Below, in pieces: positions 7,218 to 35,753 of a DNA stretch of 64,000 bases. The notes beneath the pieces are model-generated. The model had not been told where the DNA came from. It searched no databases and worked only from the letters and a program-made list of their open reading frames with translations. Positions within the stretch are counted from its first letter, which is position 1, and each line of letters begins with the position of its first letter. This DNA is from Octopus bimaculoides (Eukaryota). The stretch is from NCBI RefSeq assembly GCF_001194135.2, contig NC_069006.1, positions 16,601,763-16,665,762 on the forward strand. Direction: 5' to 3'. The position numbers were made by a program, and so were the translations under genes.

Positions 7218-7513
7218 CTGTAATATTGAAAATGATATATGAAATTAAGAAATAAGTCTATCTGCTGAGTTCATAAGGAGAGGGGACAAAATGCAATAAA
7301 CCTAACCATTATTGAAATCACTGTTATTAACCCTTTTGANNNNNNNNNNGAAGTGTAGATTTTTTTCAAAATTAACTGGAATATATAATAGAAAACAGTG
7401 TGTTTAAATAGACACATGGTTACAGAAGGGTGAAATCTTCAAAATTGCTGATGTGATATTGCATACAAACATATGTATAAATTGAGAGAGAGAGATTATA
7501 ACATAGGTATAAA

Positions 7514-7572
<59 letters not shown>

Positions 7573-10037
7573 ATTATAACAACACCCTGTAGCTTGGCTG
7601 CTAGTTCATTGAACCATAAAAGGATGAAATACTGAAAATGCCCTCAGCAAAATTTGAACTTACAATGTAAAGGTATGTAACTAAATACCAGGCATTTTGT
7701 CTGACACTAATGATATTGAAAATTCATTACCAGTGTAATAATGATATCAAGAGCCCTTAGAATTTTAAGGGCCAGAAGTGCTTAGATCTGATTTTATGAA
7801 GAAGGATGCATAAAGTGAATATCTTCTTGGTAAGACAGTGCATTCAGAAAGGTGCTAAATGAGCAGAGACATTGCAGAGTTAAAGGGGTTCTTTATTTTA
7901 TCTTGTCAAGGGCATGACAACCTGTCTAGTCTAGCTCCATGATAAAATGCACCCAGACCATTTTGTAAAGTGATAGGTGTTAAGAAGGACATCTAACTTT
8001 AGAAACCAGATAAAAATGAACTTGAATGTGCTTGTGAGACATAGTGAGACTGTGCATAGGTGGGCAGTAAATACAAATAAGAACTGATTCAGGATAACCC
8101 ATCCAGCCCATGCCAGTATGAGAAGCAGATGGATGATGATGACGATAAGACTTTCATAGAAAACAATCCTCTAAACATCGTTTGGGTGCACCAAAATGAG
8201 GTACATGTTTTGCCCCAGAAACACAATGATATACCTGTCATGGATTTGAACTCATGGTCTCTAAGCAAACAGGCCAGTTCTCCAGAACTCTCTCGCTTCT
8301 CTAATCAGATAACGCCAGTTCAAATATGTGTATTGCATTTCTTTGACATAGATACAAAGAGAATGTTTGAAGGAAAGGCATAGCATCAATATATTAGCAG
8401 TACTTATTTTATTGGTCCCAAGGAGGTGAAGAGGCAAAGATCACCAGAGTGAGATTTGAACTCAGAATCATGATAGATGAAATTCTGTGTGGTGAATCAT
8501 TTTCTCTTTGCACTTGCCCCACCCACAGTCTACTGACAGAGATGAATACATTTTTGTATATCAGGTCTCAGGCCACAAATTTATAGGGAAAGGTGATAGT
8601 GGATTTAATCAGCTCTCGTATATAATAGGTATTTAAGGTATTCATCAACTCAAGAGAGTCTCTACATAGGCTCTCAGATGGGTAGAAATAACAGCCAAAT
8701 CTTTTTTTTTTTAAATCAACGCACCATCTAAACAAAAAGGACATACTATAACAATGTAAGCGAAGCTATAAGACCTTTAACCATAGACCTGCTTAATTAG
8801 AGCAGACCGGGGGGGGGGGGCTAAAAAGCAACCAACAATTAAATATACTGCTACATTTTGTAAAGATAATATAAGTCTATCAGATATGGTCTGTATTATC
8901 AAAGAAATAGTTTATAATGAGATTCATAAAAAAAAATTTTTTAAAAAAAAAGAGAGAGAGAAAGCTAAGTTTGTGTGTCATGAGGAATGGCTAAGTTCTG
9001 ATGTTTCAGATAAGGTTTTCTTTGAAGAAGAAACGATGGGAAATATATTTAAAATCTGTGAATGAATTTTAGGAATTCAGGAAGAATAGATAAGAGGAAA
9101 TGACCAGCCGTAAACTAGATGTTCTTTTTATAATCTTTCTTCCTGTCATTTGGATTAATTCGTCCATTGGCAAATATCTCGCCCTTACATTTCCTGGGGG
9201 GGATCAACTTACTCCACAAACTTCCAGATCAATTCTTCTTGAGTTTTCGCCAAAGAAAGGGTCCTGTTTTGCTTTACCTAGAACATATCTCGCATCCCAC
9301 AAGACACGAACTATGTGGAGTTTTAAAGCCAACTAACTTTAGGCATTTTTTATCAAACCTATGCATACTGGGAAAAGGAATTACGATTTATAGCAATGTG
9401 TTACGTAAATCATATTGACAATAAGCTCACAGTAACAAAAAAGAGAAGATAGAAATTACAGGGTTCAAGTCAGATTTCATAGATTTCTGGAAGAAGATCA
9501 AAATAAATCTCAAATAATAAGGAGAATATCAAACTAAAAGTCCGTTGATAAAGGGAAGTAAGTCCAGTTAAGGGAGGTAACTAATACAGACTAAAATCAG
9601 GTGGAAAACTGTCAAATGGTCTTAGAAACGCTTTCTCTCGTGGAAACGATAGAAATAATTTAATTTCGTTTTTGTTTGGGTTATGTGACTGTCAAAGAAG
9701 CTAACCTTGGCTGATAAATACAGAGGGACGAGCAATTGGATGGCTAAAGTAAATAAAATGTAATAGGCTTGTGATATCTATATATGACTGAAATTGAAAG
9801 GGTTTTAAAAGAAATTAAGGGAAGAGGCTTTTATTGAGCCAAATGACCCAACCAAGACGAGATGATTTAGTGTCAGTTCTCTGCATGTCCCTTTTGTCAT
9901 CAAACAAGTTTGAATGTTGCAAGATATCGTTTTCCTCAGACGTGTATCACTGAAATTTTGTAAATAATGTAAGTTGACGAAAAATATTACACTAACGCAC
10001 GCGCACACAGAAACACACACACACACACACACACCAT

Positions 10038-10396
10038 CATCGTAACACTCCGTCGGTTACGACGACGAGGGTTCCAGTTGAACCGATCAACGGAGCAAGC
10101 CTGCTTGTGAAGTTAACGTGCAAGTGGCTGAGCACTCCACAGACACGTGTACCCTTAACGTAGTTCTCGGGGAGATTCAGCGTGATGTATGACCCTGTTA
10201 AAATACAGTTACAACAGAAACAGGAAGAAAGAGTGAGAGAAAGTTGTGGTGAAAGAATACAGCAGGGTTCGCCACCACCCGCTGCGGGAGCCTCGTGGGG
10301 CATTTCGGTATTTTCGCCCAATAAACACTTACAACGCCCGGTCTGGGAATCGAAACCGTAAGTCCGCTGCCCTAATCACTGGGCCATTGCGCCTCC
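10038..10396 (-). mobile_element. tRNA-derived SINE family C
   Basis: Head ggaggcgcaatggcccagtgattagggcagcggac...ggtttcgattccc; homologous to 59024-59415. Confidence 0.85.
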
Positions 10397-10929
10397 ACAC
10401 ACACCATCATAAATGTAGTACATCTAGTATACAATAATGTGCGCTCGAGCGTGTGTTTGTGTGTAGTATACCTTCTGTATGAAAATAGATGTACGATAGC
10501 TACTTTTATGTTTAGAGCTCCATGCAGATTATAATATTCCAGTCTGCTACTATCACTGTGGTTAAATAATTTCTTTACTAAGTGGTATTGAGCTACAGAG
10601 CAAATGTTGGAGATAAATACAAGTTTATATTCTTAGTTCCTACGTACGTTTCACCACTATTGTTGTTTGGAACTCTGCATTGGGTATTCCAACCGGATTT
10701 GGATGCTGAACCAGAAGGAACGACCAGGAAACACTTTATTACATTAAGTCACAGAGAACTAATGTCGAGTATTGGGTAAGGTGGTGAGGTATTTAAAAAA
10801 TATTTTGAAAGGGAAAATCGGAGAAAAGCTGGCTCAGAAAGAAAAAGAAGAAAAAAAATGAGTGAAGAGAGAAGAGAGAAAATTAGTGAGGAAACTAGGA
10901 AGAGAGAGAATGGGAAAAGGAGGAAAAGG

Positions 10930-11435
10930 GAACGAAAATAATGTGGATAAGGTGCTGATGCATGATCTTCAAATGTTGAGCCTCATGGAAACAATGACAA
11001 GTAACTGAGACTACAAGTCATACTCAAATATGCCTTGTTTGAGACCTGTCAAGCCAAAGTTGTGGCCGATGCCAATGCTGTCTAAACTGGAAGCCATGCT
11101 GGTGGCATATAAAAAGCACCGTTTGAGCATTGGGTCTAATGGAGACAGTGATAGGTGACCAATACCTTTGGCAATATACTGTGCTTGTGCAGACCTGTCA
11201 AGCCAAGTGAGATTGTAGTTGAGGCCGGTGTCACGTCAATGGCGCCTGTGCTGGTTGCACATAAAAAGCACCCACTACACTCTTAGAGTGGTTGGTGTTA
11301 GGAAGGGCATCCAGCCTTAGAAACCTTCCCAAATTAGATTGGAACCTGGTGCAGCTCCCTGGCTTATCAGTTTTCAGTCAAACCATCTAACCCATGCCAG
11401 CATGGAAAGCAGATGTTAAACAATGATGACGATAA
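10930..11435 (+). mobile_element. RTE-family 3' UTR/tail repeat copy
   Basis: Shares aaaagcacccactacactct...ggaagggcatccagc...acccatgccagcatggaaagc tail with the 18245-18830 copy. Confidence 0.75.
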
Positions 11436-12429
11436 TATGTGTGTGTGTGTGTGTTTGATACCCAACACCACTTGACAACTGGTGTTGGTGTGTTTACATC
11501 CTTGTAACTTACTGCTTTGGCAAAAGAGACCAATAGAATAAGTACCAGGCTTTAAAAAGAAAAAAAAAGCACTGGGGACGATTCATTCAACTAAAATTCG
11601 AGGTGGTACCCCAGCATGGCCACAGTCTAAATATTGAAATGGATGTAATATGTGTGTGTGCGTGTGTGTATTGCACATGATAGGCTTCTACCAACTCTAC
11701 TCACAAAGCTGTGATCAGCCTAAAGCTATAGTAGAAGACACTTGCCAAAGGTGTCACACAAAGGAACTGAACTTGAAACCACATGGTTAGGAACCAAACT
11801 TTTTAATCAGACTGCCATACCTTTACCTATATATGCACATATAACACATACACACAAATTACTGGTGCATTAAGAGTGTTTTGTTTCAATGCTATTATGT
11901 TCTTCTATAGTGTTGGCTAAAATCGTTCTGTCTGTCTGTCTCTCTCTCTCTCTATATATATACATACATACACTTTATTATACGTAATAACATTGACACA
12001 GAACAATAAGCCAGTAACTTATTAATTGAACCAGCTGCCAAGAATGCATTATACATATATATATATATATACAGCAGGTTATTAGTATTGCTATGCCAAA
12101 GAGAAATATTAATATATTATCATCATCAACATTATCATTTAACGTCTATCTTTTATGCTGGCATGGGTTGGATGATCTGACGGGAGCTGGGAAGCCAGAG
12201 AATTGTGTGTGTGTATGTGTGCATACAGGTTTACTAGCTATGTCTCTATGGATAGTTAAAAAGATTTATTTAGTCACTCATGAAATCCCAATTTTGCCAT
12301 CGCAATAATATTGTATATGAAGTTATGGTGTTCACATCTGCCTGTACATATAGTGCTGGTTAAAACTGTATTCTCCCACTCTCTTATAGAATATATTATA
12401 TATTTATTTATATGTGTGTGTGTGTGTGT

Positions 12430-12830
12430 ATTCTTTTCTTTTACTTGTTTCAGTGATTTGACAGCGACCATGCTGGAGCACTGCCATGAAGGCTTTTAGT
12501 TGAACAAGTCAACCCCAGGACTTATTTTTTTAAGCCCAGTACTTATTCTATTGGTCTTTTTTGCTGAACTGCTAAGTTAAGGGGACATTAACACACCAAC
12601 ACTGATTGTCAAGTGATGATGAAGGGGGACAAACACAGACACATGCACAGATATATATATATATATATATATATGAACAATGGGCTTCTTTCAGTTTCCG
12701 TCTCCCAAATCCACTCACAAGGCTTTGGTTTGGCTCAAGGCTGTAGTAGAAGACACTTTCCCAAAGTGCCATGCAGTGGGACTGAACCCATGTGGTTGGG
12801 AAGCAAGCTTCTTACCACACACACATGCCT
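12430..12830 (-). mobile_element. SINE family A, diverged copy
   Basis: Family head, core and tail recognisable. Confidence 0.8.
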
Positions 12831-15006: not shown

Positions 15007-15135
15007 CTGACAAAAACAGAAAACAGTGAGGAGTATATTAACTAAAACAGTAGTCCAGGTAACCAACTCGGACTGAAGAATAACATCATCAGGTCCAGGT
15101 TCAAGAGGACACATAGTGTCATTAACTGACTGCAT
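15007..15135 (-). CDS. Candidate alternative first coding exon of a motor-less MYO18 isoform with predicted TM helix: MQSVNDTMCPLEPGPDDVILQSELVTWTTVLVNILLTVFCFCQ
   Basis: ATG with A at -3, in-frame TAG shortly upstream, strong phase-0 donor CAG|gtaagc, unique protein-like sequence. Confidence 0.55.
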
Positions 15136-16475: not shown

Positions 16476-17640
16476 TTGCCTGTTCAGAAGACTATCTTAA
16501 CACGGCCACTCCTAGAAATTAAAAGCAAGATCAAACTCTATCGTGAAAAGGAAAGAGCAGACAGAGAGAGAGAGAAAAGGGCTGTGGAAAGCATAAAAAC
16601 AAATCCCAAAGCTTTCTATAAATTCGCAAAGGAAACAGCCAGAATACAATGTAAAATAGGACTATTGTTCCAAGGAAATGACTCACTGATGACAGACCCA
16701 GGAAGGGTAAGTGAGATACTCAGTGAACAATTTAAAAGTGTCTTCATTTCACCCCTTGGACACATGCAGATAAAAAATCCAGCTGAATTCTTTGATATTG
16801 CAGGTCTAAAAAAGGAGGCACCAGCCATTGGTTACATCAACATTGAGGAAACAGATGTAACAGTGGCCATAGAAGAAATGAGCTCATGCTCCACTACTGG
16901 TCCTGATGGCTTCCCAGCTATTCTCCTAAAGTCATGTAAGCAGGCTTTAGTTTCCTTGTAAGTGGAATACTTCATAAAAAAACTGAAAGAAGGCATTATA
17001 TGCCCTATCCACAAAGGTGGAAGCAGAGCAGAGGCCAAAAACTACAGGCTAATCTCTCCAACTTCGCATATCAGTAAAGTCATAGAGCGAATCATCAGAA
17101 AGAAGTTGATAATGTTCCTAGAAGAAAATGACCTACTGAACAATACACAGCATGGCTTCTGTCCAGAAAGAAGCTGCCTTACACAGCTCCTACAGCACCA
17201 TGACTGGGTTTTGAAACAGCTGCTTGACCACTCAGATGTCAGCATGATATACCTTGACTTCCCAAAGGTATTTGATAAGGTAAATCATGGCGTGATAAGT
17301 CATAAGCTACGAGACATTGGCATTGCTGGTAAACTGGGAGAGTGGCTGCATGACTTCTTGAAAAACAGAAGCCAGCTAGCTGCAGCCAATGGTGCACTTT
17401 CTGAGGAAACTCAAATATTAAGTGATGTCCCCCAGGGAACTATTCTGGGGCCATTACTGTTCATAATAGCCCTCTTAGACATGCCCACAGTCATTCAGAC
17501 AGCTACTGTCACTAGCTAAGCCGATGATACAAAATTATCACAGGCAATAAAAAACCAAGATGATGTCACAAGCTTACAGTGGGACCTAAATTCAATATTC
17601 AAGTGGGCCAAAATAAACAACATGCTGGAATATTTCAGGC
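16476..17640 (+). mobile_element. CR1/L2-group LINE reverse transcriptase pseudogene fragment
   Basis: GPDGFP, PIHKGGSRAEAKNYR, QHGF, IYLDF.K.FDKV, VPQGTILGPLLF motifs; in-frame stops at 16961 and at the Tyr of YADD (17517-17519). Confidence 0.93.
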
Positions 17641-18244: not shown

Positions 18245-18830
18245 GTGTGTATAAATGACAAATGAGAATGGATGAGGATAGCTGCGTGAAAAAGTGCCAC
18301 ACCCTAACAGTTGAGGGAACCCGTGGAAGAGGTAGGCCCAGGAAGACCTGGGCTGAGGTGGTGAGGCAAGACCTTCGTACATTGGGCNNNNNNNNNNNNN
18401 NNNNNNNNNNNNNNNNNNNNNNNNNNNNNNNNNNNNNNNNNNNNNNNNNNNNNNNNNNNNNNNNNNNNNNNNNNNNNNNNNNNNNNNNNNNNNNNNNNNN
18501 NNNNNNNNNNNNNNNNNNNNNNNNNNNNNNNNGTAGGATTTTCAAGTGAGATCGTTGCCAGTGACCCTGGACTGGCTTGTGCGGGTGGCACATAAAAGAC
18601 ACCATTTCGAGCGTGGCTGTTTTCGTGCGTGTGACACGTAAAAGCACCCACTACACTCTCTGAGTGGTTGGCGTTAGGAAGGGCATCCAGCTGTAGAAAC
18701 TCTGCCAAATTAGATTGGAGCCTGGTGTTGCCATCCGGTTTCACCAGTCCTCAGTCAAATCGTCCAACCCATGCTAGCATGGAAGGCGGACGTTAAACGA
18801 TGATGATGATGATGATGATGATGATGATAT
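18245..18830 (+). mobile_element. RTE LINE 3' end with (GAT)n tail (gap inside)
   Basis: MRMDEDSCVKKCHTLTVEGTRGRGRPRKTWAEVVRQDLRTLG followed by the family 3' UTR ending ggacgttaaacgatgatgat. Confidence 0.88.
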
Positions 18831-21856: not shown

Positions 21857-22076
21857 GGGCAGGGAATTGTCAATTAGTAATAGAATTAATAATTAACAAT
21901 TATGCCAAGTAGTTCCATTAGAGAAAAATTTGTAGTTTGGAATCAGTAGTTCTTTGACTGCTATTTCTAAATTTTCAGTATGTTGGAGAAGCAACTCAAG
22001 CTAATCCCTGTATATTTATGAGTATATATATATATTTGTATATATATNNNNNNNNNNNNNNNNNNNNNNNNNNNNN

Positions 22077-22161
<85 letters not shown>

Positions 22162-23346
22162 AATACAGATATCATTCTTTTGTCACTACTATTGCTGTCA
22201 TCCATGTATCTATTGCTCATGCTTCTAGCACTCATGGCCCTTACTGCTTATTTCTCAATTACTACCACTCCTTCTAAATCTCACTTTACTACTTTACTAG
22301 TGTGACTAAGGATGGTAGTGGATCTCGGTTGTTCACCATACAGTGCTTCCAGTATAAAACTAAGGATGCTAACACTCTCACTAACACTCCAGCCTCTTTC
22401 TCTCATCCGTTATCACTGCTTCACCCATATTGAGACATTTACTTAAAAACCCTCCACAGATTCACATGTACCCCATAAACTCTACCTGTACTCTCTTCTA
22501 AGTTGTTTCGTATTGACACTCATCATTCACCATCAAGGTTTATCTACTTCTTCTGATCCCTCACCCATCACATTCTCACTTCTATCCTCCCTGGTGCTGG
22601 TATCACAATAAAATGACCTCAGTGCATTCTGTTAAGAATGGAGAGAAGAGATCTTTTCAGTCTTGTCAAAGACATGGTAACCTCCCTAGTGTTGGTGCCT
22701 CAAAAATCAAAATTCACCTAATGCATTCAGAAAAGTAACTGTTGATGTTAGGAAGGACATCCAGTTATAGAAACCAAGCCAAAATGAAACTTATAAGCAA
22801 TGTGGTCATTTGATCTATTTGGGAGTGCAGCAACAAGGTATGGCACCTCTACAAGCATGGAAAGTAGATGTAAAGTAATGATGACTGTAATGATATATAA
22901 TCATACATATATACACATCTACATATATTCAGTCAACAGCTGAAATCTAGAGATGCTCAATATAAGGTCTTTATTGAGGACTAGGTCCATGGAGTAAAGA
23001 GTGGCTATAAGAGAAATCTAGGTGAACTGATACGAGATAGTCATGCAGATAAATACAATAAGGTTTAGATATATATAAATATACATACATATACATATAC
23101 ACAGAGAGACAACTAAAAAATTCATCCTCAAACCCAACAAATTCATTTACGTGTGTGTGTGTGTGTGTGTAGTTGTAGGCAGAGCAGTAAAAGTTAAACA
23201 TTGAGGAAGGGAATTTATGTGGGGTTTGGTGTAGAGTTGCAACCATCCAACTGTTGCACCCTTGCACAAACTGAACAAGATAAGCGGCAGAACACATGAG
23301 ACCGAGGAGCAGGGTAGGGCTTAAAAAAAAAAATGATAATACATAC

Positions 23347-24015
23347 ATTGAACTCTGAACCATGAAGCTGGGGTCCCATTTTATAGTGGGACCGTATAAG
23401 AAGCTGAGGAAGTTCAGCAAATTTGCCCTTGGTGTTGTTGTTGTTGTTGTTGTTGTTAACGTTATCTTCTTCATCACTGGAAGTAGTGATCCAACAGCGA
23501 AAGTTGTTGCATATGAAATCCTTGACCGAGTATTCCAGCGACAGAGACGTGTCACAAGAAGAGTAGGCAGAAGAGGAAGAAGAGAGGGAACTGGCTAAAG
23601 AGGAGCACGATTCGAAGGAAGAGAAGGAAGATTCCAAGGAAAGAAACCTGGTTTGGGGAGCAGCACTGTGAAGGCTGCTTAGATCCTCGTCAATGTAGGA
23701 AATAAGATCATCCTCATCTGAGAGCGGCAATTTGGTCTTGGTTTTCCCCTCACTTTTGTCTGGACTTTCAGCAGGTAGACATGGGTAAGACAGTAAAGGT
23801 AACACAGCTGTAGTAGTTTTATTTCCCTCGTCTGGCTCTTCGGCAAGGTATTGTGCAAGTAACAGGTTTTCGGAGGGCATGATAATCATGCAGGAAATAT
23901 AACTGTTCAGCTGATTGCTAAATTCAGGGTGAAGGACGGAGTCTGGCCACTTCACAGGACACCTTGAGCTCGTGCTTACTGGTAGAATTTGGTGGGTACT
24001 GATAAGTTCTTCCAT
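23347..24015 (-). CDS. Candidate alternative first coding exon of a motor-less MYO18 isoform (223 codons, Ser/Asp/Glu/Asn-rich, disordered-looking)
   Basis: Longest gap-free ORF in the window (266 codons); acaATGG Kozak context; long pyrimidine tract and cag acceptor (exon start 24031); phase-0 donor AAT|gtatgt at 23347; a second phase-0 donor CCA|gtaagc after codon 12 (23980). Confidence 0.6.
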
Positions 24016-25039
24016 TGTTGTATAACAGGGGCTGAGAGGGAAAGAGAGAGAAAGAGAGAGAGAGAGAGGGAGTGGATTGAAGGCAAAGACGAGTGGGGAG
24101 GGAGTGGAGAAGGGAGGTGTATGAAATATGTGGTGAAAAAAAATTAAGGGATACCAATATGAAACTGTGCCTCAAAGGAAATGGTGATTGAAGAACTGGT
24201 TGTTTGAGAGTGAAGGGTGCCTAAAGTTCCGTGGGAAGAAGGGTTCATAGTTATACCTTAACTACTGCAGGTAGCGAAACAGTGGATGGGACAGACAGGA
24301 TTGAAGGGACTGTGTGAGAAGAGTCTACCCCGGAAGACTGAGAAAGGTATTCTAACTAAACTGGCTTAGTTACAGTAGTAGCACAGAGAGAAGGGGAGAA
24401 GGCAGAAGAGAGAGTGTGAGAAAGAGAGAGAGGCAGGGAGGGGATTATCAAGTAAACAGACTGTGAATACCAACTAACAGACAAACAGCAGATGTGATGG
24501 AGGTGGAGGAGGTGAATGTAGGTGTAAGTGAATCAGATGGTAGTGAGACATCATCATCATCATCATGGGTACTGTACAGACAGTGTGTGTGTGTGTGTGT
24601 GTGTATGTGGGGGTGGGGGAAGGAAGGGTGGTTGTAGTGTGAAGGTAAGGACAACAGAAGAAGGTGAACATCAACAGAAAGTCTGGTGAGGAGACTGACA
24701 GAGGAAGTAGTTACAATGTTCAACAGCAGCGGCAATTATAACTACTACTACTACTACAGTAGCATTAACAGCGGCTACAACAACAGTAAAAACAACAGTA
24801 GTAAGAACAGTACTCCATCTCTATATATCAAAGTATAATGCTTGCATGGCTTATTGTGTGATTATAAACACACACACACACACATTGAAATACAGGTATA
24901 CTCAAATATACAGAGAATCTCCAACCACAAATTCTCATTTAGGGATCCTGGAAAGATGTCATGCCGCGTCCTTTGTTGACCACATATGGCACCTGAAGGA
25001 CAAAGGGAAGATCCTGGAAAAACTAAGTCCCTAAAGGAG

Positions 25040-25870
25040 ACAACCCCTTGTGCTTGGTCTTTCTTCTTGGTATTCACACCAGAAGCTCCAATACAAACAT
25101 TTCAGAGTGTTTGAGTGTCGATCTGAGGACAGTGCAGAGGATGTGGAAAGAGTTGGATGAGTCTATTGATGATTATGAAGGTATGGCAGATCAGAAAATT
25201 CACTCTGATCATTCTAATAAGAAAAGAACTCCTGAATTTATTGGTGAGGTCCCGGTCATGATTGACAACAATCCCTCCAAGTCAATCAGGTTCATCACCA
25301 GGAACATGGGAGTGTCTGAGTTTCTTATCAGGCAGGTAGTGCATGAAAACATTCAGTATTTCTCATACAAGATGAGAAAGGGCCAGTTTTTATCCCAAGT
25401 CATCAAGGACAAGAAGAAACACCATGCTACAAAAGCTTTTGAATAAATTCAAGCATACCCTCCAACCGAACATGCCTTGGTTGTTCTCAGATGAGAAAAA
25501 ATTCTGTCGGGATTAGATGGTGAACACACAGGTCAACCGTTGGCTTGCTGTATCCCCAAAACATGTACCGAGAGTGATACAGGTCAAACATCCAGTCAAC
25601 ACAGACTCCAGCTCAACACAGAGGCCTACATCAAGTTCCTGGAGGAAGTAGTGCTGCACTGAGTGAAGAGGGTGGCTACTAGAAGACCCTGTATCTGGCA
25701 ACAGGGCTCTGCACCATGCCACACAAGCAGGAGAGCCCAGTCATCCCTGTCAGACAATTTCTGCAACCATATCACCCCTAACATCTGGCCACCTAACTCC
25801 ATAGACTGAAACTCCCTTGTAACACCAAAGATGAACCGAAGGCAAGGATTATGACAGCTTTCACCAACTT
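25040..25870 (+). mobile_element. Tc1/mariner superfamily (maT/DD37D-like) transposase pseudogene
   Basis: KRTPEFI...SKSIR...FSYKMRKGQFLS, FSDEK, WQQGSAPCHTS, HITPNIWPPNS motifs with frameshifts. Confidence 0.8.
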
Positions 25871-26210
25871 AAACAAAGAAACCATCTTCTCTAGAACCTC
25901 ATATCACCAAACATCTTGCTCCACTGTCATTTCCTCTGTGAGCCCCAACATCCTAAGATCAGTCCTTACCACTTCATCCCATGTCTTTCTGGGTCTCTCT
26001 CTTCCACAGGCACCATCTACTTTCAGTGACAGGCACTTCAGTATACAGCTGTCTTCACTCATACACATCACGTGTCCAAACCAATGCATTCTCCTCTCCT
26101 GCATACCACATTTAATCCCTCTCGTGCCCAACTTTTCTCTCAACACAGTTGTGCTTTGTCAGTCATGCACTCCGATGTAGCAAATCGGACGAAGCATACT
26201 AGCTTCATTC
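25870..26210 (-). mobile_element. RTE LINE fragment
   Basis: HWFGHVMCMSEDSCILKCLSLKVDGACGRERPRKTWDEVVRTDLRMLGL. Confidence 0.88.
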
Positions 26211-26604
26211 CCTTCCAGCCTATGCATGTCCTCAACAGTCAGAGCCCATGTCTCACTACCAACAACACACAAGTAAGTGTGCATACATGCATGCATGCAA
26301 TTAGGTGTGTGTGTGTGAATCTGTATGTTTTGATGTGTGTGTATTTATGTGTTCATGTGGCTGTGTATATTATAGCCTAAACTTGTGGATTACTTCACAT
26401 TGTTGGTTTGTAATTTTCTAATTAGCCATGCTCTTCTGATTTTGTATGTGCACATGTACGTATGTATGAGTGTTGAATAAGCTGGTATATTAATATGCCA
26501 GATAGAGTAACATTCTGGTTATATGTTTACACACACACATATACTAGTGTCTGCGTGTGCATGCGTGTACATACATGTTTGCAAGGTTTAATATATGTAT
26601 GAAT

Positions 26605-26647
<43 letters not shown>

Positions 26648-29149
26648 GATGTAGGTGATATTAAGAATAAGATGACAGTTCAAGAAATCAAAGGTTGGGA
26701 TGGAAGATCTAGCAAGAACAACAACAGATATAAAAGGAGAAGTGGGTAAGAGGGGGAAAAAAGAGTAAATATAACCAAAACATTTACATAAATCAGGATG
26801 TATTGCAAAAATGAGATGAAATACAGTGAGGAGATGGTAGAGGGAGGGTTGTTAAGGTTTGACTAAAATAAAAGGGTGGAAAGTGGGTAGGTGAGGACAA
26901 CACCAGCAGGGTATCTGGTGTAAACATGCCGAGACCCTCAGGTAAATAGTGTGTTTACTTTGCCTAACCCATATGGGATGTGTAGAAAAGAGGGCGGAGT
27001 GGGAAGGGGGGAAGTGGTTTGTGGATGCTGGTAAGGGTAGGTTGGGTGTCTGTAGGTGCATGGGGTAAGTGGGAAAGTGGGGGGGGGGCTTCTGTGGCTG
27101 CTAGGGGTTCCCTTTCTTTCTTCTATTTTGGTAACCAAATTTAAGTCGTAAGTTCAGCATTCTGACAACTGTAGCCCAACCTTGAGTCTGCTTTTTAGTC
27201 AACAACATCACTATCACCAACATTGCTACTACACTTACCCCCCCCCCACAACTTCTGTCATACCCATCTCCATTACCATATCATCTTCATCATAAGAAAC
27301 CCATCATCACCATCTTTTTCATAACTATAACATCATCGTCGTCGTCATCCCCACCACCATCAACATTGCCATCACTTATAACATCCTCATCATCACCATC
27401 ATCACATCCATCCTCATCATCATCATCACTATTGCCAACATAATCACCATAATGCTCATTCCTATGATAACCATCACTATCATCTTCATTAACATATCAT
27501 CAGCATCACAATGGCATCCTAATTCTCACCATCGTCATCATAGGTTCACCAATCTTAACAAGTCACTGGACAGTTATAACTAGAATATTTTTTGGTCTGC
27601 TCAATCATGTCTGCTTGATCAAGGATGATGCAGGGCTGAACAACAATAAAGGGTTAGGTAACTGAACCAGTAACTGAAACTAACCTATTCTGTCATTTTT
27701 CTATTTGTCTTTTTTTTTGCTTCCTTCTGTTCAAACTATAAGATGATGATGATAATGAGGAAGAGGAAGAGAAGGAGCTATAAATTTTAAGGACTCTCTC
27801 TCTGACTTTGTCCACCCAACTCTAAATAAGTACAATATAGAGGAATAACTAATGAAACACTAGATGAATGGAAGCAGTACCATGAAATTAAAGTGTAATT
27901 AGTTAGCTTGTAGTCAGATGATTCCTGTTCTGAGAGAAATCTACCTGCAATGGACTGGCATTCTCATCATGCCCAATGCTGCAGAAAGCACAGATAAGCA
28001 CTGCCCCTTGTACTTTCATGGAATTTGGAAGATAAGAAAAAAAGGAAAAAAAAAAATCAGTTAAAGCTGTGTTTTAGATATATCAGTTGTAATTTGAGAG
28101 GGAAAGATATTGATAAGACATTAGGGATTAGGGTAGGTTTTCAAATTGGCGTTTAACATCCACTATGTGGGATTACAGTTATTTATAGGGTTTGGCTGGT
28201 TACAGTTTTTATCTTAAACCTGATGGATACATACTATTACACACAGTCTGTAACATATATACACACATAAACACATCTATTTTCACACTCTTGGATAGAT
28301 TCTATAACACACAGAATAGAAAATACATATATTATTACACACAGACAACATACATATACTATCACACGTATAGACAGTTCGAGTATTACAAACACTGTTA
28401 CAGCACACAGAGACTACAGAACACATAAATCATTACACAGCTTATGACAGTCAATCACACAGCCTCATCCAGCCTATCACACATAGAGACTTATATTGAT
28501 TCTTAACAAATATATTTGTACTTTAGTAGACCTTAAATCTGACAGGGAGGGCTTCATTAATCAAAACTTACAAAACTGATCTAATTAACTCTTCCACCAC
28601 TACTACAACAACCACTGCTCTTCTTAACCTCCTGACTGCATACAACCCCCACTTCTTCTACACAAAATAATTTGCTGTTCCCAAGTATATCTTATTCCAG
28701 ACAACTCAGTAACCACTATCTTCATACTAAAAGCAAGCCTCTCTGTCTTTCCTATTTAGAATCTCTCCCTCTGTCTTAATTACAAATCCATAACATGTAT
28801 GGTGTATCCAAGACTACATTTTGCAACATGTGTTTTGTGTTAGAAAACAGGAAGATGTAATTTGAAATTTTAGCTGCTATTTCTAAAAGTTAGAGACTAG
28901 GCAGAGGCTCTCTCATTGAAGAAATAGACATTATTTAATCACAGGCACACCTTGATTGAGTAGGCCTAAGATAAAAAAAAAAAACAACTTCTAAGCCTAT
29001 GTCATTAACTAATTCATAACTATATAAGAAGTGTACTGTCTAACAGTTTCAATTACTTTTCAGTATGATCGAAAATGATTAAATAACAAGATATTAGTAA
29101 CTTTAAATATTGGTATTGATTTTAAACAGTTTTGACCAAGTGGTCTGTA

Positions 29150-29882
29150 TTCAATAAAATTGCCATTGGCTTTGACCACAGCCTCCAGACGACTTCAGAA
29201 TCTGCTGCAACTCTTCTGGATGCTCTCCTTGTTTAAGTTGGTAAATGCTGTCATAATCCTTGTCTTCGGTTCATCTTTGGTCTTACAAGGAGTTTTGTTG
29301 GTCTCTCACTCAACTGCACCCTACACATAATAATCAAGGGGGTTGTAGTCTGGGGAGTTAGGTGGCCAGATGTTAGGGGTGATGTGGTGGCAGAAATTGT
29401 CTGACAGCCAGACTGGGTTCCCTTGCTTGTGTGGCATGGTGCAGAATCCTGTTGCCAGACAAAGGGTCTTCCAGCAGCCACCCTCTTCACCCAGGGCTGC
29501 ACTAGGCCTCCATGTTGAGTCTGAGGTTGTGTGGGAAGATGAATGGAGGCATAACATCGCCACCGCTAGTGATCACTCCAAACACCATAATGTTGACTGG
29601 ATGTTTGATTTTTATCACTCTCGGTACTCTACATTGTCCTCAGATTGACATCCAAACACTCTGAAATGTTCGTATTGGAGCTCCCGGCATGAATGCCAAG
29701 CAGTACAGCATATTGTTTCCAAACTTTTAGTAGAGTGAATTGCATCATGGTGCTGTTTTTCTCACAGATGGTGCCCAACTGACACTAATACACTGTGTAG
29801 TCGCCAAAATCAAAAACAAACAATGCGCCTGCATGAAATTAAAAATATAAAATGCCGACAGTTTACCCATTACATCCTATAT
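29150..29882 (-). mobile_element. Internally deleted copy of the same maT-like family, with a terminal end near 29880
   Basis: WQQDSAPCHTS, NIWPPNSPDYNPLDYYV; shares gctccaatacgaacatttcagagtgttt with the 25040 copy. Confidence 0.8.
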
Positions 29883-31861
29883 ATATACATGTATGTATGT
29901 ATGTATGTATGTATGAATGTATGTCATCATCATCATCGTTTAACGTCTGCTTTCCATGCTGGCATGGGTTGGACGATTTGACTGAGGACTGGTGAAACCA
30001 GATGGCAACACCAGGCTCCAATCTGATTTGGCAGAGTTTCTACATGTATGTATGTATATATATATATATANNNNNNNNNNNNNNNNNNNNNNNNNNNNNN
30101 NNNNNNNNNNNNNNNNNNNNNNNNNNNNNNNNNNNNNNNNNNNNNNNNNNNNNNNNNNNNNNNNNNNNNNNNNNNNNNNNNNNNNNNNNNNNNNNNNNNN
30201 NNNNNNNNNNNNNNNNNNNNNNNNNNNNNNNNNNNNNNNNNNNNNNNNNNNNNNNNNNNNNNNNNNNNNNNNNNNNNNNNNNNNNNNNNNNNNNNNNNAC
30301 TAATAGGTGCAGGCGTAACAATGTAGTTGAGAAGTTTGTTTTTTGGATTCAGTTCCAATGCATAACACCTTAGGCAAGTGTCTTCTCGTGAGTGGTAGAT
30401 GGAAACTGAAAGAAGCCATTCATACACATGAATGCATGCATGCATGCACGTATACTCTTTACTCTTTTACTTGTTTCAGTCATTTGACTGCGGCCACAGA
30501 ATAAGTACTAGGCTTACAAAGAATAAGACTGCATGGCTGCAGTCTTACAAAGAATAAGACTGCATGGCTGCAGTCAAATGACTGAAACAAATAAAAGAAT
30601 CTACTTAAATGATTTTTAAAAAAATATGTTTTAATGCAGAAGGCATCTCCGAGTAATTCCTACATGGAGTAACTTTTGACACAGAAGTCAAAGGTTACTC
30701 CATCCACAGTTCAAGTGTGTCTTATAGTGACAGCCAGAAAAGAGCCTGTACGTGGATGATCAAGAAGACAAAGAAGGTCAGGGTTGGTAATATGTTTCAT
30801 TACAGGTCTGCTCAATCAAGGTTGACCTGGGGTTAAACAACAACAATGACTTTCATCTACTCTATGATATGAAGTGAAGTTACTCTTCCTTCTCTCTCCT
30901 CCTTCCTCTCCTCATCACTCCCTCCTCCCTTTGTTCTTCAACTTCATTATTTCCACATGATGCACTACTGGAACCATTCCAAATTGGATAAAAAAAAAAA
31001 AATGCAAATAGTTTGTCATCTAACATATGCCTGAGTGGGAGCATAGAAATGTGTTCGGTTGCATACCAAGCAAGTACCATCATGTGTGCAGCACAGCTAC
31101 CAAGCCAACCACCACCTCTGAAATATCTCAGGCAGATGATGTGTGGTGCCATGGTCATTTGAAACAGCTCAGACACAGTCAAAGACAGTAAGGCAAAATA
31201 ACAGGTTTGCCGCATGAATTCTTGAAACACCCTGGTCTTGTTCACTGCAGTAAAATATTCCCTTAAAACCAATATGCTGATTTACAAAATTAGTAATATG
31301 CTAATTATTATGAATTGCAAAATATTTTATTTTACCTCTATGAAAAAAAAAAAAAAAAAAAAATCAAATATAATTTCTGGCAAGAAATCTATGTAATATA
31401 AGAAAGTGTCGAATTTCAAAGTTGTTTTATATAAAATCCTCTTCAGATATAGCTATAAGTTCAAGGCTAGATTGAAAAGCAAAGAACATAAAAATAAAAA
31501 AATGAAAATAAAAATAAAACAAATTTCTGTCAAGAAGTAACAGAATTAAATTTGGTTTTCCAGCAGAGTGCTCCGAACTGAACATGTGCTGTGGTACTAA
31601 ATATAGATCACATCAAATAAACCTGGCAGTCAGCTCTTCTAATATGATTATACACATAGCAAGGGCATGTGTACGTGTGTGTGTGTGTGTGTGTGCTGAT
31701 AGACAAACATCAACTCAACTAACCAAAAGAGAAATGTTAACAGAAACACTGACAGGCACACAAACAGACAAGACTAAAACTAGGAAGAATAAACAGTGAC
31801 ATTTCATTAGGAACAACACATCACCGTATACCTTCTGACTCACACTCTACATTCTTTTCCA

Positions 31862-31904
<43 letters not shown>

Positions 31905-31949
31905 GCATGTCCAAGTGCCTATATCAGAAATCATTGCAACAATTATGGT

Positions 31950-32610
31950 TAAAGCAATGAGCTGGCAAAATTGTTAGCATGCTGGACAAATGCTTAGCGG
32001 CATTTTGTCTGTTGCTACATTCTGAGTTCAAATTCTGCCAAGGTAAAACTTTACCTTTCATTCTTTTGGAGTCAATAAAATAACTACCAATCAAGTACCA
32101 GGGTCAATATAATCGACTAATACCACCTCATCCAAATTTCTGGACTTTTGCTTATAGTAGAAACATTATTATTAAGGAAGCAAGCTAGTAGAATTGTTAG
32201 AGTGTCAGACAAAATGCTTAGGAACATTTTGTCTGGCTTTTTACATCCTGAATTCAAACTCCACTAAAGTTGACTGCCTTTCATTGTTTCGGGATTAATT
32301 AAATAAGTACCTATTCTGTCTAAGGGTCAATGTAACTGACTAACCCTTTACCCCTAAAATTACTGACTTAGTGCCAAAAATTTGAAACAATTATTATTAT
32401 CATTAAGGTAGTGAACTGGTAGAATTGTTAGCTCATCAGACAAAATGCTTAGCAACATTTTTTGCAGCCCTTTATATTTTGAGTTCAAAGGCAGAAGTCT
32501 TTCATCCTTTCTATGCTGATAAAATACAATACCAGTAGAGTACTGAGGACAGTGTGATCGACTTATTCCCTCCCCTCAAAACTGCTGACTTTGTGCCAAA
32601 TTTAGAAGTA
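31950..32610 (+). mobile_element. Three tandem copies of tRNA-derived SINE family B (Nin/Deu-like core)
   Basis: Repeated gagctggcag..gttagc...ttctgagttcaaatt...ctttcatccttt..ggtcgataaa.taagtaccag; further copies near 20290, 43040, 43270, 48950, 49185 and 60500-60740. Confidence 0.8.
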
Positions 32611-34197
32611 TTATGTAAGTATTGCATGAGAAAGCAGCACACACCATCAAGTGACACTGGGACAAGCTCACCTACCGCCTTTCTTTCAATTAATTTTTGG
32701 AAAAAAATTAGGAATTTAGTAAAATAACTTTGCCATTGTTAAGCTGGTGTTTGGAATAGAACATGAAATTTTGATGGGTTTTAATTTTGGTCACTTGAGA
32801 GCAGCAAGTTTGTATCAGAACCAGGATTGGTCTTCATGGGGTAGGTATCGAAAGGATTAAAGAGATAATTGTTAGAAATATTGAATTTAAAAAGGAACGA
32901 AGGGTTTTGGTATTCAGTTAAAACCCTCCCTATGTCCTGAGTTCAAAACATATCACGGTTGACTTAGCCTTCAGGTAATAACAAAAGCTACCAGGGAAAT
33001 ACTAGGGTTGATTTAATTAAGAACCCTTCCTTCAAAATTTAAGTCCTCCGGTCTACATTAGAAACAATTATTCAAATTACATGGATCAGCAGACTTGTTC
33101 AAGTGTTGGTATTTGTTCTGGCTCTTTAACTTCCAAGTTCATATCCTGCCAAAGCCAACTTTGCCTTTCATCTCTTGGTTGGAGGAGAGGGAGGGGGAGT
33201 GGGTCTATAAAATAAATTTCCATTCAGGTACTGAGGTAAATATTATCAACAGCCATTCCCTTCTTCTGCCCTTGCACCTAAACATAACAATTATTTATAA
33301 CTGCAGATGGCGGAATCAGTAGAGCATGGACCAAAAGGAAAAATAAAAAAAAAGGTGGCATTTATCCCTTCATATTCTGAGTTCAAATCTCAACAAGGTT
33401 AAGATTGCTTTTGAAATCAAACATTAGGATGAAGGGGTGGAGAACAACTTCAATTATCTATATCCTTTCCTTCCTTCCTTCCCCAAAGATATGTGGCCAT
33501 ATGCCAAGTCAGAAAGCAACCATTGTTGTTATTATTGTTGTTTTTCTTATTATTGAGAGATTTTTGTTTATAGTTTGGCATTTTTTTTTTAACCAAGCCA
33601 ACCTTGGCACAGTTCCTAAAATTTCAAAACCAAAAGCAAGAACAATGAAGGAACATTTCCAGACCTGTTATGTCAAAAGCAGAGAGGTTAACAGAATGAT
33701 GGTAAGTGATTTAGCAGAAAGAGAGAGAGGTTGAGAGAGAAAGAATGAAGGAGATGAAGAGAGGAAAGGAGAGAGAGACAGAGACAGAGAGGTGAAGAAT
33801 GAGAAGAACGATAGTCATGATGGTGGTGGTGGTGGGTGGCTCAATGTTTCATGTAAACAGATTATTTAGGAAGTAGAAATAGTCGAGAGAACGATAACAG
33901 GATGAAGAGAGGCAAGTGGATACATTAGGTAAAATGTTTTGCATGAAACTACTAAACTCATGCTGCATGTGACTGTAACAACAGTGCACTCTGACTGCGA
34001 TAGCAGCGAATGTGAGTGCATCAGTAGTGTACGGTGACTGTAATAAAAGTGTACGGTGACTGTGACAAAGTGAACAGTGACTGTAGATTTACATGTTTTA
34101 TATTCATTGAATGTTTTCTTTTTTTTAATAGGTATTGTCTGGAGAAAGGAGACCATGCTCTGTCTCCTAGCTCTCCAGGACTGGTGAGCTGGAAGAT

Positions 34198-34608
34198 ACT
34201 CTCTCTTTACTTGTTTCAGTCTTTTGACTGTGGCCATGCTGGGACACCACCTTTTAGTCGAGCAAATCGACCCCAGGACTTATTCTTTGGAAGCCTAGTA
34301 CTTATTCTATCGGTCTCTTTTGCTGAACCGCTAATTTACGGGGACGTAACCACACCAGCATCGGTTGTCAAGCAATGTTGGGGGGACAAACACAGACACA
34401 CAAACACATACACACATACATTTATATATATATATACATATATACGACAGGCTTCTTTCAGTTTCCGTCTACCAAATCCACTCACAAGGCTTTGGTCGGC
34501 CCGAGGCTATAGGAGAAGACACTTGCCCAAGATGCCACACAGTGGGACTGAACCCGGAACCATGTGGTTGGTAAGCAAGCTACTTACCACACAGCCACTC
34601 CTACGCCT
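34198..34608 (-). mobile_element. tRNA-derived SINE family A (internal TA/TG microsatellite), full length
   Basis: Head ggcgtaggagtggctgtgtggtaagtagc...ggttcagtccc (A/B boxes) and tail gaaacaagtaaagagag; many copies in the window. Confidence 0.9.
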
Positions 34609-34639
34609 TAACATTCCTCTTCAATCACTGAACCAGTCA

Positions 34640-35520
34640 GCATCTACAAGTAAAACATGAGCAGGGTGGGAATTCCAGAGAGCTGATATTCTGGAAGGGA
34701 AGGACCGGACAAGGTGGTCAGCAGAAAGCCTTGACATGGTGTAGGCATGACAAGCAGGAAGAGTGGTACAGTAGAGATGGTTGAAAACAAGTCAGCTGAG
34801 ATGCAGAAGTCACAGCAAGGAGAGGAAAACGAAGCAAAAAGAACAGGTGGCACATGTGTGGGCCAAGCATTTGTAAATGGCTACTCAACGGCGTTTCTTA
34901 GTATGCAATCTTGAATGTCGGTCTTTGTAGCAGAAGTACCATTCCTGATGTGAGCAAAGTACTTTATTGGGGGGGGGGGGTCTACGGTGTTGAAGCAGTA
35001 CTCTAGAATGTTAATATAATTAGCAGTAGCAACAGCATCCCAGATGTGGGAACTTACTCGAGTTTTGTAGGGAGTCTGTAGTTGGGAGGGTAGGAGACAA
35101 AGGCCAGTCTTTGTTATACTGAAGATGTGGGATCATCAGGAAAAATCCTCAGGAATACAAGGACTAAGATTTGTTGGAAGTATAAATGTACTTGTGTGCT
35201 GTTCACGTTTAGAGGGAAGAGTACTATAAAGTTTCCTTGATATTTGTAGTGATTGTATCTTTGTACTCTGTTGAAGATAATGGTATTACCTCAGTAGAGG
35301 ATGTTTATCAAGTCTCTGCTCAAAAAATCAGTGCAGGTTTGGCATGAGGTGTCCACATTGCATGTGGGTGGTGAAGAATAGTATATACATAGGTGCGGCT
35401 ATTGTTGGAAGTGATGGCAAATAAGTCGATAACAAAAATATACAGTAGTTTTAGGGAGGAGACTGTAACAGTAGTGAGGTGACTAAAACAGTAGTAATGC
35501 ATCCATATCCTACTGTAAAT
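34640..35520 (-). mobile_element. Possible highly decayed Penelope-like element
   Basis: Weak remnants only: FLRIFPDD (cf. LRRICSDD) and FCISADL...RLSADHL (cf. GIY-YIG region). Confidence 0.25.
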
Positions 35521-35753
35521 GTGTAAAAAAAATGAAACATGTAATACTACAGAAAGGTGACATAGTAAATAGTGATATAGTACAAGCTACTCTGACATGC
35601 TACAGGTAGCATTACAGAAAGGGACATCACAGAAGACAATAGACAGTAACATCACAGTGGATGACAATATAAATAACATAAGGAGCCACAGAGGGTGGCC
35701 ACACAGAGGGTGTCAAAATAAATAGCATAATCAATGAATATAAAGGTCCTTAC

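Follow-up and report, generated by a model that had tools for sequence, protein, structure and literature searches.

The 28.5-kb intron at the converter/IQ boundary of a cephalopod myosin gene that we assign to class 18 contains a genuine coding exon (24015-23347, minus strand), which is under purifying selection, is conserved in coleoids together with its donor and is placed after the motor exons. We lean, slightly, towards reading the intron as the site of one conserved alternative first coding exon, running from the ATG at 24015 to the donor at 23347. Positions are those of the window, i.e. the whole 64,000-nucleotide stretch of DNA that was analysed.

The host gene and its large intron

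Sixteen exons encoding a class-18 myosin motor were found on the minus strand of the window, with the P-loop GRSGSGKT within exon 62451-62203. The best 102 relatives of the concatenated exons are MYO18-type, with identities of 41-54% over 88-100% of the length; the named ones among them are annotated as 'unconventional myosin-XVIIIa', 'Myosin-XVIIIa' or 'MY18A' and have the domains PF24556 and PF00063. By sequence, the motor is closest to myosin-18 and not to other classes, and we classify the host gene as a class-18 (XVIII) myosin. No cephalopod MYO18 protein is among these best 102 relatives, and all matches are of 1,187 aa or less. Searching the window with tblastn gave no tail exon in 1-7088 and no exon upstream of 62451; the coiled-coil tail and the N-terminal PDZ lie outside the window. 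The exons and splice sites that border the intron are as follows.

35754-35839, minus strand: last motor (converter) exon before the large intron, IIKHYLDHMDIDKLNYRIGLSQ, identified by sequence and by tblastn to Candidula MYO18 residues 797-824.
35754, minus strand: donor of the converter exon, CAG/GTAAGG, phase 0, after ...NYRIGLSQ; donor score 8/9.
7218-35753, minus strand: intron at the converter/IQ boundary (IGLSQ/VFFRAG), 28,536 nt, including 412 N in four gaps.
7089-7217, minus strand: acceptor exon with the last converter strand and, straight after the converter, the IQ motif (VFFRAG...KLK); 73% identity to Candidula MYO18 residues 814-857 (tblastn).
7089-7217, minus strand: splice sites of the acceptor exon, phase-0 acceptor ...ttacag before 7217 and donor AAA/GTAAGT.

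An intron of 28,536 nt at IGLSQ/VFFRAG had been proposed in the initial annotation of this DNA, and is confirmed by both splice sites and by alignment with a gastropod MYO18 protein, which spans both flanking exons with nothing missing, so that the interval 7218-35753 is a true intron. The accompanying statement that the other 14 complete introns are much shorter also holds, as they measure about 0.1-4.1 kb by tblastn exon coordinates. Since the intron after the IQ exon exceeds 7 kb and is incomplete, the 28.5-kb intron is the largest complete one and not necessarily unique. Its length is approximate, with the order of its five contigs dependent on scaffolding across four gaps.

7340-7349: gap of 10 N that lies 123 nt 5' of the VFFRAG acceptor; the flanks do not overlap and continuity is not demonstrable.
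18388-18532: gap between two different repeat families.
22048-22076: gap in a (TA)n microsatellite, 1.3 kb 3' of the conserved exon.
30071-30298: gap that begins within a (TA)n run, 6 kb 5' of the conserved exon.

Continuity is arguable at the microsatellite gaps only. None of the four gaps touches an ORF or a splice site. The contig that carries the conserved exon (22077-30070) has assembly gaps at both ends; a gap-free cuttlefish locus with the same arrangement, described below, supports the assembled order of the window.

Besides the conserved ATG exon, the interval 7218-35753 contains transposable element (TE) relics, and sequence found repeatedly in the window accounts for about 19% of it. 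Its other long ORFs either derive from TEs or are of low complexity; one TE relic was recognized by Pfam.

16476-17519, plus strand: LINE-type reverse-transcriptase relic, antisense to the gene and interrupted by a stop (PF00078, E 1.3e-17).

An ATG exon with a phase-0 donor

23347-24015, minus strand: conserved ATG coding exon of 223 codons, MEELIS...GSEFN, recognized by ORF statistics, homologues and dN/dS.

This exon is located inside the intron (35753-7218), on the same strand as the motor exons and downstream of them. Its ATG has a good context (acaacaATGg) and is the first in-frame Met, as is that of the cuttlefish counterpart. The donor is in phase 0 (AAT/GTATGT) and its score of 7/9 is within the range of this gene's real donors, GTATG donors occurring at real exons of this myosin-18 gene. 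The frame of the ATG continues for 43 codons beyond the donor, to a stop at 23215. Altogether the open frame around 24015-23347 covers 275 codons, for which the chance expectation in the intron is 0.0014, rising to 0.11 with the lowest local stop density; the stop depletion is specific to the frame of the ATG exon. A Pfam scan of the ORF gave no domain, and no second copy of the exon was found elsewhere in the window. The product is Ser-rich and acidic (it can also be described as Ser/Leu-rich) and is predicted to be disordered, with a mean AlphaFold2 pLDDT of 28.9. The suggestion that such exons add a 'new anchoring domain' is speculative for a product of predicted disorder in which no known domain was recognized.

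The initial annotation had listed at least two ATG-initiated, non-repeat ORFs ending exactly at phase-0 donors. The ORF at 24015-23347 is real and has no other copy in the window; two additional candidates fared differently.

23980-24015, minus strand: 'short form' from the ATG to CCA/GTAAGC, an internal GT of the 24015 ORF and one of its 7 phase-0 GTs.
15007-15135, minus strand: 43-codon ATG ORF ending CAG/GTAAGC, at chance level and not conserved.

As the 23980 donor sits in the 24015 ORF, it does not define a second ORF, and no counterpart of it is found in the aligned N-terminus of cuttlefish. Nor do the ORFs end exactly at their donors, given that the 24015 frame reads on for 43 codons and holds seven phase-0 GTs. 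The 15135-15007 ORF is at chance level, since the intron has two ATG ORFs of 40 aa or more with a phase-0 GTRAG at their end on its sense strand and equally two on its antisense strand; it had no match in the cuttlefish locus.

Conservation and selection in cuttlefish

A phmmer search against 1.84 billion representatives returned a single homologue cluster for the exon product (E 5e-10), restricted to cuttlefish and made up of six sequences, including CAE1229497.1 (Acanthosepion pharaonis). A profile built from the ORF and its cuttlefish homologue gave no match beyond the same cluster. The exons of the window and cuttlefish are 37-43% identical and share the motifs EDDLxxY, SSAYSSC, ICNNFRCW, PQLxxSH and SEFN. 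Protein similarity stops at SEFN/VCI. At the DNA level, the two align in two islands only, one of which spans the donor with 22 of 22 nucleotides identical (TCAGAGTTCAAT/GTATGTATTA; window 23358-23337, cuttlefish sequence L001 2073-2094).

23337-23346, minus strand: first 10 intron bases past the donor, GTATGTATTA, the same in cuttlefish; similarity stops here.

Three cuttlefish lineages were compared. Their 549-nt exon has no indels, as against 12-173 gapped columns in the flanks, and its dN/dS is 0.15-0.21 in the ATG frame versus 0.7-4.7 in two control frames. Variable sites are distributed 3:5:14 over the three codon positions (P=0.0035), and the dS of the exon approximates the divergence of the downstream intron. 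The ~470 nt 5' of the cuttlefish ATG are conserved among cuttlefish as strongly as the exon itself, which is suggestive of a transcription start of its own inside the intron.

These data bear on the reading that the ORF arose by chance in pyrimidine-rich sequence or is the relic of a TE gene. In favour of it, pyrimidines make up 56-70% of the minus strand at this place, another frame has few stops as well, the product is rich in Ser and Leu and lacks a Pfam domain, and TE relics abound in the intron. However, such frames are expected at only 0.0014-0.11, there is no copy in the window, and the single homologue cluster among 1.84 billion representatives is unlike a TE. With synteny in cuttlefish, dN/dS of 0.15-0.21, an exon free of indels and a conserved donor, we regard this reading as highly improbable.

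The S. pharaonis locus is free of gaps; in it the exon is on the same strand as, and less than 1 kb past the end of, a PF00063 Myosin_head gene model, whose terminal exon is low-complexity junk. A search of the cuttlefish locus L002 to ±10 kb of the exon gave neither the IGLSQ nor the VFFRAG exon; that the cuttlefish exon lies in the orthologous intron we infer from the myosin-head model next to it. A weak tblastx match between L002 19023-19196 and window 7525-7352 was rejected, having stops and no IQ exon after it.

Comparing the intron of the window with L002 by blastn and tblastx gave no further conserved exons, only microsatellites and low complexity. Likewise, neither the 16 kb of the window that separate the exon from the IQ exon nor the 10 kb downstream of it in cuttlefish contained another conserved coding block. 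The initial annotation had pointed to the orthologous intron of other coleoids as a place to look; in cuttlefish, the 24015-23347 exon is conserved, and the 15135-15007 ORF and the 23980 donor are not.

The same annotation had postulated internal promoters, in the plural, and a set of swappable N-terminal adaptors (24015-23347, 24015-23980, 15135-15007 and more) feeding the IQ motif and coiled coil. The intron is large, headless Myo10 has three transcription start sites (TSSs) in one intron, and lineage-specific exons would be invisible to the cuttlefish comparison. Against this, the 23980 donor is unconserved, and its ORF has seven phase-0 GTs in all; ORFs like the 43-aa one are just as frequent on the antisense strand, and it lacks a cuttlefish match; the other long ORFs of the intron come from TEs or from low-complexity sequence. 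With no other conserved block, the claim of a set is not borne out, and we consider a multi-exon arrangement improbable.

A proposed alternative start for a head-less myosin-18

Because the donor at 23347 and the acceptor at 7217 (cag/GTT) are both in phase 0, the reading frame of the exon would run on into the IQ exon. An internal transcription start, a 23347>7217 junction and a function for the exon are proposed. Transcription would begin within the intron, either immediately 5' of the ATG or at a short untranslated exon whose donor is joined to the CAG at 24032. The phase-0 donor of the 223-codon exon would then be joined to the phase-0 acceptor at 7217. The product would consist of a disordered, Ser-rich, acidic N-terminus with a few short conserved motifs, continuing into the last six residues of the converter, the IQ motif and, encoded outside the window, the coiled-coil tail. 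Such a head-less myosin-18 could enter myosin-2/myosin-18 filaments via its tail and display a different N-terminal module.

A candidate acceptor for the leader precedes the ATG.

24031-24060, minus strand: pyrimidine tract and CAG (AG 24033-24032), 16 nt upstream of the ATG, seen in the sequence.

This tract may be the 3' splice site of an untranslated leader exon; a counterpart in cuttlefish, ...ccacatctcag, is found 54 nt before the ATG. Its presence shortly before the ATG in both species also fits a regulated 'poison' cassette, running from the CAG at 24032 to the donor at 23347, that would introduce a premature stop and yield a tail-less motor or an NMD target. Indeed, splicing of the phase-0 IGLSQ exon to this CAG would enter the wrong frame and meet a stop at 23924, within an out-of-frame ORF of 83 aa (23924-24175). 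But it is the ATG frame that is under selection, along the whole of its 183-223 codons, and not the short out-of-frame reading; the out-of-frame peptides of the two species are unrelated, and a poison exon has no need for 549-669 nt without indels; this explanation is decidedly improbable. Use as a cassette exon was rejected, the exon being out of frame in both the window and cuttlefish.

The exon might instead be the first coding exon of an independent nested gene, its donor joining small undetected downstream exons and not the IQ exon. The S. pharaonis annotation does break up the myosin gene here, in the intron, listing the exon as a separate, unrelated gene of 159 aa; this model is, however, an ab initio one that reads through the donor and is not transcript-based. 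All six cuttlefish entries run on past the donor, which is what genomic DNA or unspliced RNA would give. The spliced myosin fusion is also absent from the protein collections searched: no product of the form ..SEFN-VFFRAG.. is present in a 5.8-billion-protein collection, a word-indexed homologue search with the ORF plus IQ exon as query gave no match, and an exact look-up of the 266-aa read-through ORF returned nothing on record. Shorter or fast-evolving exons, as divergent as this one (37-43% identity), would escape tblastx. On the other hand, no second conserved block exists in the 16 kb downstream in the window or the 10 kb in cuttlefish, the donor phase fits the next known myosin exon, and the position after the motor exons is kept across coleoids. 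We rate a nested gene as unlikely; should transcripts fail to confirm the junction, the finding would reduce to a small orphan gene of coleoids within the intron.

Comparison with known myosin systems

Myosin-18 is thought to be an adaptor sprinkled in myosin-2 filaments, showing N- and C-terminal extensions. In mammals, the N-terminus of Myo18A (alpha, beta and gamma) and Myo18B varies through alternative 5' exons, and the gamma and 18B extensions are Pro/Ser-rich (PMC11112018); the idea is that class-18 N-terminal extensions recruit partners to mixed myosin-2 filaments. All of these isoforms keep the motor domain, whereas the exon described here, located past the motor exons, cannot join upstream of them. 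The background on class-18 N-terminal isoforms given in the initial annotation is borne out in Drosophila, where N-terminally truncated isoforms of Mhcl, of the same class, are predicted to lack the PDZ or the motor, 5'RACE having confirmed the PDZ and ΔPDZ forms only (PMC3122231). The short fly forms, in contrast, are not reported with a conserved unique N-terminal exon of 180-220 residues, and phmmer against 1.84 billion representatives found no homology between them and the cephalopod exon.

Starts inside a large motor-region intron are known from another myosin class. Mammalian headless Myo10 uses TSSs 8.6-29.5 kb into such an intron, spliced to downstream exons; lacking a working motor, it is regarded as a scaffold or dominant negative (PMC5725431). 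Its headless-specific exons are untranslated (or add one Met) and so provide no new protein module, unlike the exon here. The Drosophila myosin rod protein, a thick-filament component, arises from an alternative start in the Mhc gene that gives a unique N-terminus plus rod (PMC3912159), much as proposed here. That N-terminus is a 5' extension of the first rod exon and is unconserved even among related insects (PMC3912159), whereas ours is a separate exon deep in an intron and is conserved between the window and cuttlefish.

An architectural parallel comes from molluscs: catchin/myorod, an alternative product of the muscle myosin heavy-chain gene in catch muscle, has a unique domain that bears phosphorylation sites (PMC3912159, PMC4410989), and the exon here is similarly Ser-rich and predicted to be disordered. 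The two differ in that the host of catchin/myorod is a class-2 muscle myosin and here a class-18 myosin, that catchin begins inside the rod and lacks the IQ motif, which the product proposed here would retain, and that catchin is proven at the protein level while our product is deduced from sequence. Since phmmer and the profile search gave the cuttlefish cluster only, and Pfam none, the resemblance is one of architecture and not of ancestry. We give about even chances to the full picture, in which a coleoid-specific, conserved, disordered, Ser-rich module with an internal start would produce a head-less, IQ-bearing myosin-18 that joins myosin-2 filaments, an independent counterpart of catchin/myorod in a non-muscle-type myosin.

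If this is true, cephalopods use the myosin-18 tail alone for filament targeting, in parallel to catchin/myorod, and the shared motifs (EDDLxxY to SEFN) offer defined sequence for antibodies, proteomics and knock-outs. Similar exons are probably hidden in other large-intron cephalopod genes.

Host gene and motor exons

The window is AT-rich (G+C ~37%) and includes eleven assembly gaps. On its minus strand, 16 exons of a myosin motor were delineated from stretches free of stop codons together with tblastn matches to a gastropod MYO18 protein; they extend from 62451-62203, which carries the P-loop GRSGSGKT, to the IQ-bearing exon 7217-7089, which begins with VFFRAG. The concatenated exons matched 102 proteins, all of them MYO18-type (41–54% identity, Pfam PF24556 and PF00063) and, where named, called unconventional myosin-XVIIIa, Myosin-XVIIIa or MY18A, which by homology identifies the host gene as a class-18 myosin. 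There was no cephalopod protein among the 102 and the longest had at most 1,187 residues; the protein collection evidently yields no full-length MYO18 proteins. One motor exon was weakly supported:

36536-36447, minus strand: motor exon, E 0.003–0.008

A gap of 457 N (35909-36365) adjoins this exon and reaches within 70 nt of the acceptor region of the last motor exon (35839-35754, the IGLSQ exon), and the exon/intron structure around 36447-36536 and the gap is the least certain stretch of the motor model. Two 10-N gaps are flanked by exact duplicates, of 37 nt at 39708-39717 (39667-39703 = 39718-39754, 100% identical) and of 261 nt at 42864-42873 (42603-42863 = 42874-43134, 100% identical). 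They suggest that overlapping ends of contigs were placed on either side of a gap, which would make them artefactual duplications within two myosin-18 introns. Downstream of the IQ exon, two neighbouring open frames at 5900-6326 (minus strand), LRLYGQYVSGRKADLTERLKG... and ...HSADCNC, are similar to SAP- or SWIM-type domesticated or transposable element proteins and are not myosin tail exons.

The converter intron

The IGLSQ exon (...IIKHYLDHMDIDKLNYRIGLSQ) stops at 35754 with the donor CAG/GTAAGG, and the VFFRAG exon opens at 7217, preceded by ...ttacag. In tblastn the gastropod MYO18 protein bridges both exons without missing residues, which makes 35753..7218 a genuine intron located where the converter ends. 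Its length of 28,536 nt, like the order of its five contigs, depends on scaffolding. The observation of the initial annotation is confirmed in part. The other 14 complete introns measure about 0.1–4.1 kb; the next intron downstream, after the IQ exon, is longer than 7 kb and runs beyond the window edge. Four gaps (412 N altogether) lie inside the intron, two of them in (TA)n microsatellites and one flanked by two distinct repeat families; the fourth, the 10 N at 7340-7349, 123 nt ahead of the acceptor, has flanks without overlap. The gaps leave all candidate exons and splice sites intact. About 19% of the intron sequence recurs elsewhere in the window. The intron contains the LINE relic and, judged by eye, mariner-type transposase relics among the following mobile element-like features of the window:

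16476-17519, plus strand (antisense to the myosin gene): LINE-type reverse-transcriptase relic, two ORFs split by a stop (PF00078, E 1.3e-17)
25048-25446 (plus), 29251-29563 (minus), 47205-47623 (minus), 52090-52826 (minus): mariner/Tc1-type transposase-like ORF fragments, judged by eye
58269-58578, 56414-56726, 29924-30044, 18535-18824, 11264-11436, both orientations: short interspersed repeat of ~300 nt in several introns, copies 83–96% identical

The mariner/Tc1-like fragments include ...WQQDSAPCHTS... and ...QHDSVPCHTSGKNQKWL..., and the one scanned against Pfam gave a weak DUF7769 match. One copy of the ~300-nt repeat adjoins the gap 18388-18532.

A conserved exon inside the intron

The intron had been proposed to contain at least two ATG-initiated ORFs ending at phase-0 donors, of which one proved real and conserved:

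24015-23347, minus strand: candidate first coding exon, ATG to donor AAT/GTATGT, 223 codons, product MEELIS...GSEFN
15135-15007, minus strand: ATG ORF of only 43 codons

The 223 codons lie within a 275-codon open frame that continues to a stop at 23215. At the stop density of the intron (5.2 per 100 codons) 0.0014 frames of this length are expected, and 0.11 at the lowest local density; the depletion of stops is mainly in the frame of the exon (the three frames of 23200-24099 have 1, 6 and 16 stops per 300 codons). The donor at 23980 was rejected as a separate ORF: it is among the seven phase-0 GT dinucleotides that the ORF starting at 24015 contains. The ORF 15135-15007 was rejected as being at chance level, since ATG ORFs of ≥40 codons that run into a phase-0 GTRAG are as frequent in sense (two) as in antisense (two) within the intron. 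Ending at a phase-0 donor is therefore uninformative alone. No Pfam family was found in the 223-aa product and a word-indexed homologue search with it returned no match.

When 1.84 billion representatives were searched exhaustively with phmmer, a single match emerged, a cuttlefish cluster representative (E 5e-10, 43% identity, residues 79–223). Its 90% cluster holds six sequences, five from Logan assemblies of sequencing runs and the sixth CAE1229497.1, 'unnamed protein product [Acanthosepion pharaonis]', from the pharaoh cuttlefish. The motifs EDDLxxY, SSAYSSC, ICNNFRCW(I/V)T, PQLxxSH and SEFN are kept between window and cuttlefish, and the rest is divergent and Ser-rich. All six cuttlefish sequences read ...YRSEFN and then VCITLHKL..., while the window reads ...GSEFN and then VCIIIFFF...; as the residues after SEFN/VCI differ, the similarity stops exactly at the proposed donor. 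In nucleotide alignment, only two islands are common to the window and the cuttlefish contig, one of 27/30 nt coding for ICNNFRCW and a perfect one of 22/22 nt, TCAGAGTTCAAT/GTATGTATTA, composed of 12 exon bases and the first 10 intron bases. The comparison with other coleoids suggested by the initial annotation shows, for cuttlefish, conservation of both exon 24015-23347 and its donor.

Selection was assessed in an alignment of four contigs that represent three cuttlefish lineages. The 549-nt cuttlefish exon has no indels in any pair, compared with 12–32 gapped columns upstream and 36–173 downstream. In the ATG frame dN/dS is 0.15–0.21 (dS 0.06–0.09, close to the 4–8% mismatch of the downstream intron), in the two other frames it is 0.7–4.7, and the 22 variable sites are distributed 3:5:14 over the codon positions (P=0.0035). 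The lack of indels, the low ATG-frame dN/dS and the codon-position bias together indicate, on comparative grounds, that the exon is translated in the ATG frame, at least in cuttlefish. Among cuttlefish, the conservation of the ~470 nt preceding the ATG and of the initial ~130 nt of the intron is similar to that of the exon, which is compatible with, but not proof of, regulatory constraint. All four contigs also include an invariant GTAAGT upstream of the ATG, ~66 nt before an acceptor-like site ...CATCTCAG (positions 1400-1490 of the contig aligned to the window), which may mark a very small intron in the 5' UTR or have arisen by chance.

In the genomic locus of S. (Acanthosepion) pharaonis (CAHIKZ030000616.1:768,899-789,378, without N) the exon begins at 9812, with the donor directly after 10360. 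Ahead of it and in the same orientation, a gene model with an 868-aa product (PF00063, Myosin_head) ends at 9069; its final 'exon' (8791-9069) is low-complexity junk; evidently, no real exons were left for the ab initio prediction within a large intron. Searching ±10 kb around the cuttlefish exon recovered neither the IGLSQ exon nor the VFFRAG exon, which fits an intron exceeding 20 kb in cuttlefish too. From the adjoining myosin-head model we infer that the exon occupies the same intron there. The public A. pharaonis annotation breaks the myosin gene at this intron (locus positions 1-10480 = CAHIKZ030000616.1:768899-779378), and CAE1229497.1 presents the exon as a separate 159-aa gene with an internal Met start, reading through the splice donor.

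A candidate head-less isoform

The exon is 3' of all motor exons, so it cannot provide an N-terminus for an isoform that includes the motor. In window and cuttlefish alike, no in-frame Met precedes its ATG, which is in a good context (acaacaATGg and aaaaccATGc, respectively). The phase-0 donor matches the phase-0 acceptor of VFFRAG, the next conserved exon on the strand, and its consensus score of 7/9 falls among those of the real donors of the gene, several of which are also GTATG. In the window, the stretch from this exon to the IQ exon yielded no further conserved coding block, and neither did the 10 kb downstream in cuttlefish. In the most economical model, which we consider slightly better than an even bet, transcription would start inside the intron and donor 23347 would be joined in frame to the acceptor at 7217. 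The product would be a head-less myosin-18 with a disordered N-terminus followed by the IQ motif and the coiled coil; AlphaFold2 gave the exon product a mean pLDDT of 28.9. The interpretation of the initial annotation is supported in part: there is strong support for one exon as real and conserved, with a predicted junction and promoter, and none beyond this single exon for multiple promoters or a swappable set of adaptors.

Alternatively, the exon may belong to an independent nested gene, spliced to a small, undetected downstream exon. No recorded protein has the exon joined to any other sequence (word-indexed search, profile search and exact look-up), and all database copies read through the donor; for these reasons the nested gene, improbable as we judge it, remains a serious rival to the head-less isoform. 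A pyrimidine tract and CAG precede the ATG by 16 nt in the window (exon start 24031) and by 54 nt in cuttlefish, so a short, untranslated leader exon may lie farther 5'. Splicing of the IGLSQ exon to this acceptor would shift the frame and lead to a stop within 23–35 codons in both species, with unrelated window and cuttlefish peptides, which excludes a coding cassette exon. Such a 'poison exon' of full-length myosin-18 would leave the selection on the long ATG frame unexplained.

Head-less products have precedents. The background invoked by the initial annotation, on motor-less Drosophila Mhcl forms and on co-assembly of mammalian MYO18A with non-muscle myosin II, holds. For Mhcl, shorter predicted isoforms are without PDZ or motor domain (Guzik-Lendrum et al. 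2011, PMC3122231), and the transcription start sites of headless Myo10 lie 8.6–29.5 kb into a motor-region intron (PMC5725431). Molluscan catchin/myorod is the closest proven case in architecture, and Drosophila myosin rod protein and headless Myo10 are additional ones. The conserved exon is not homologous to any of these three (phmmer matched the cuttlefish cluster only); moreover, the host here is of class 18 and the predicted product would keep an IQ motif. By analogy, the exon may thus represent a known type, a head-less myosin isoform with an intronic first exon and a putative splice to the IQ exon.
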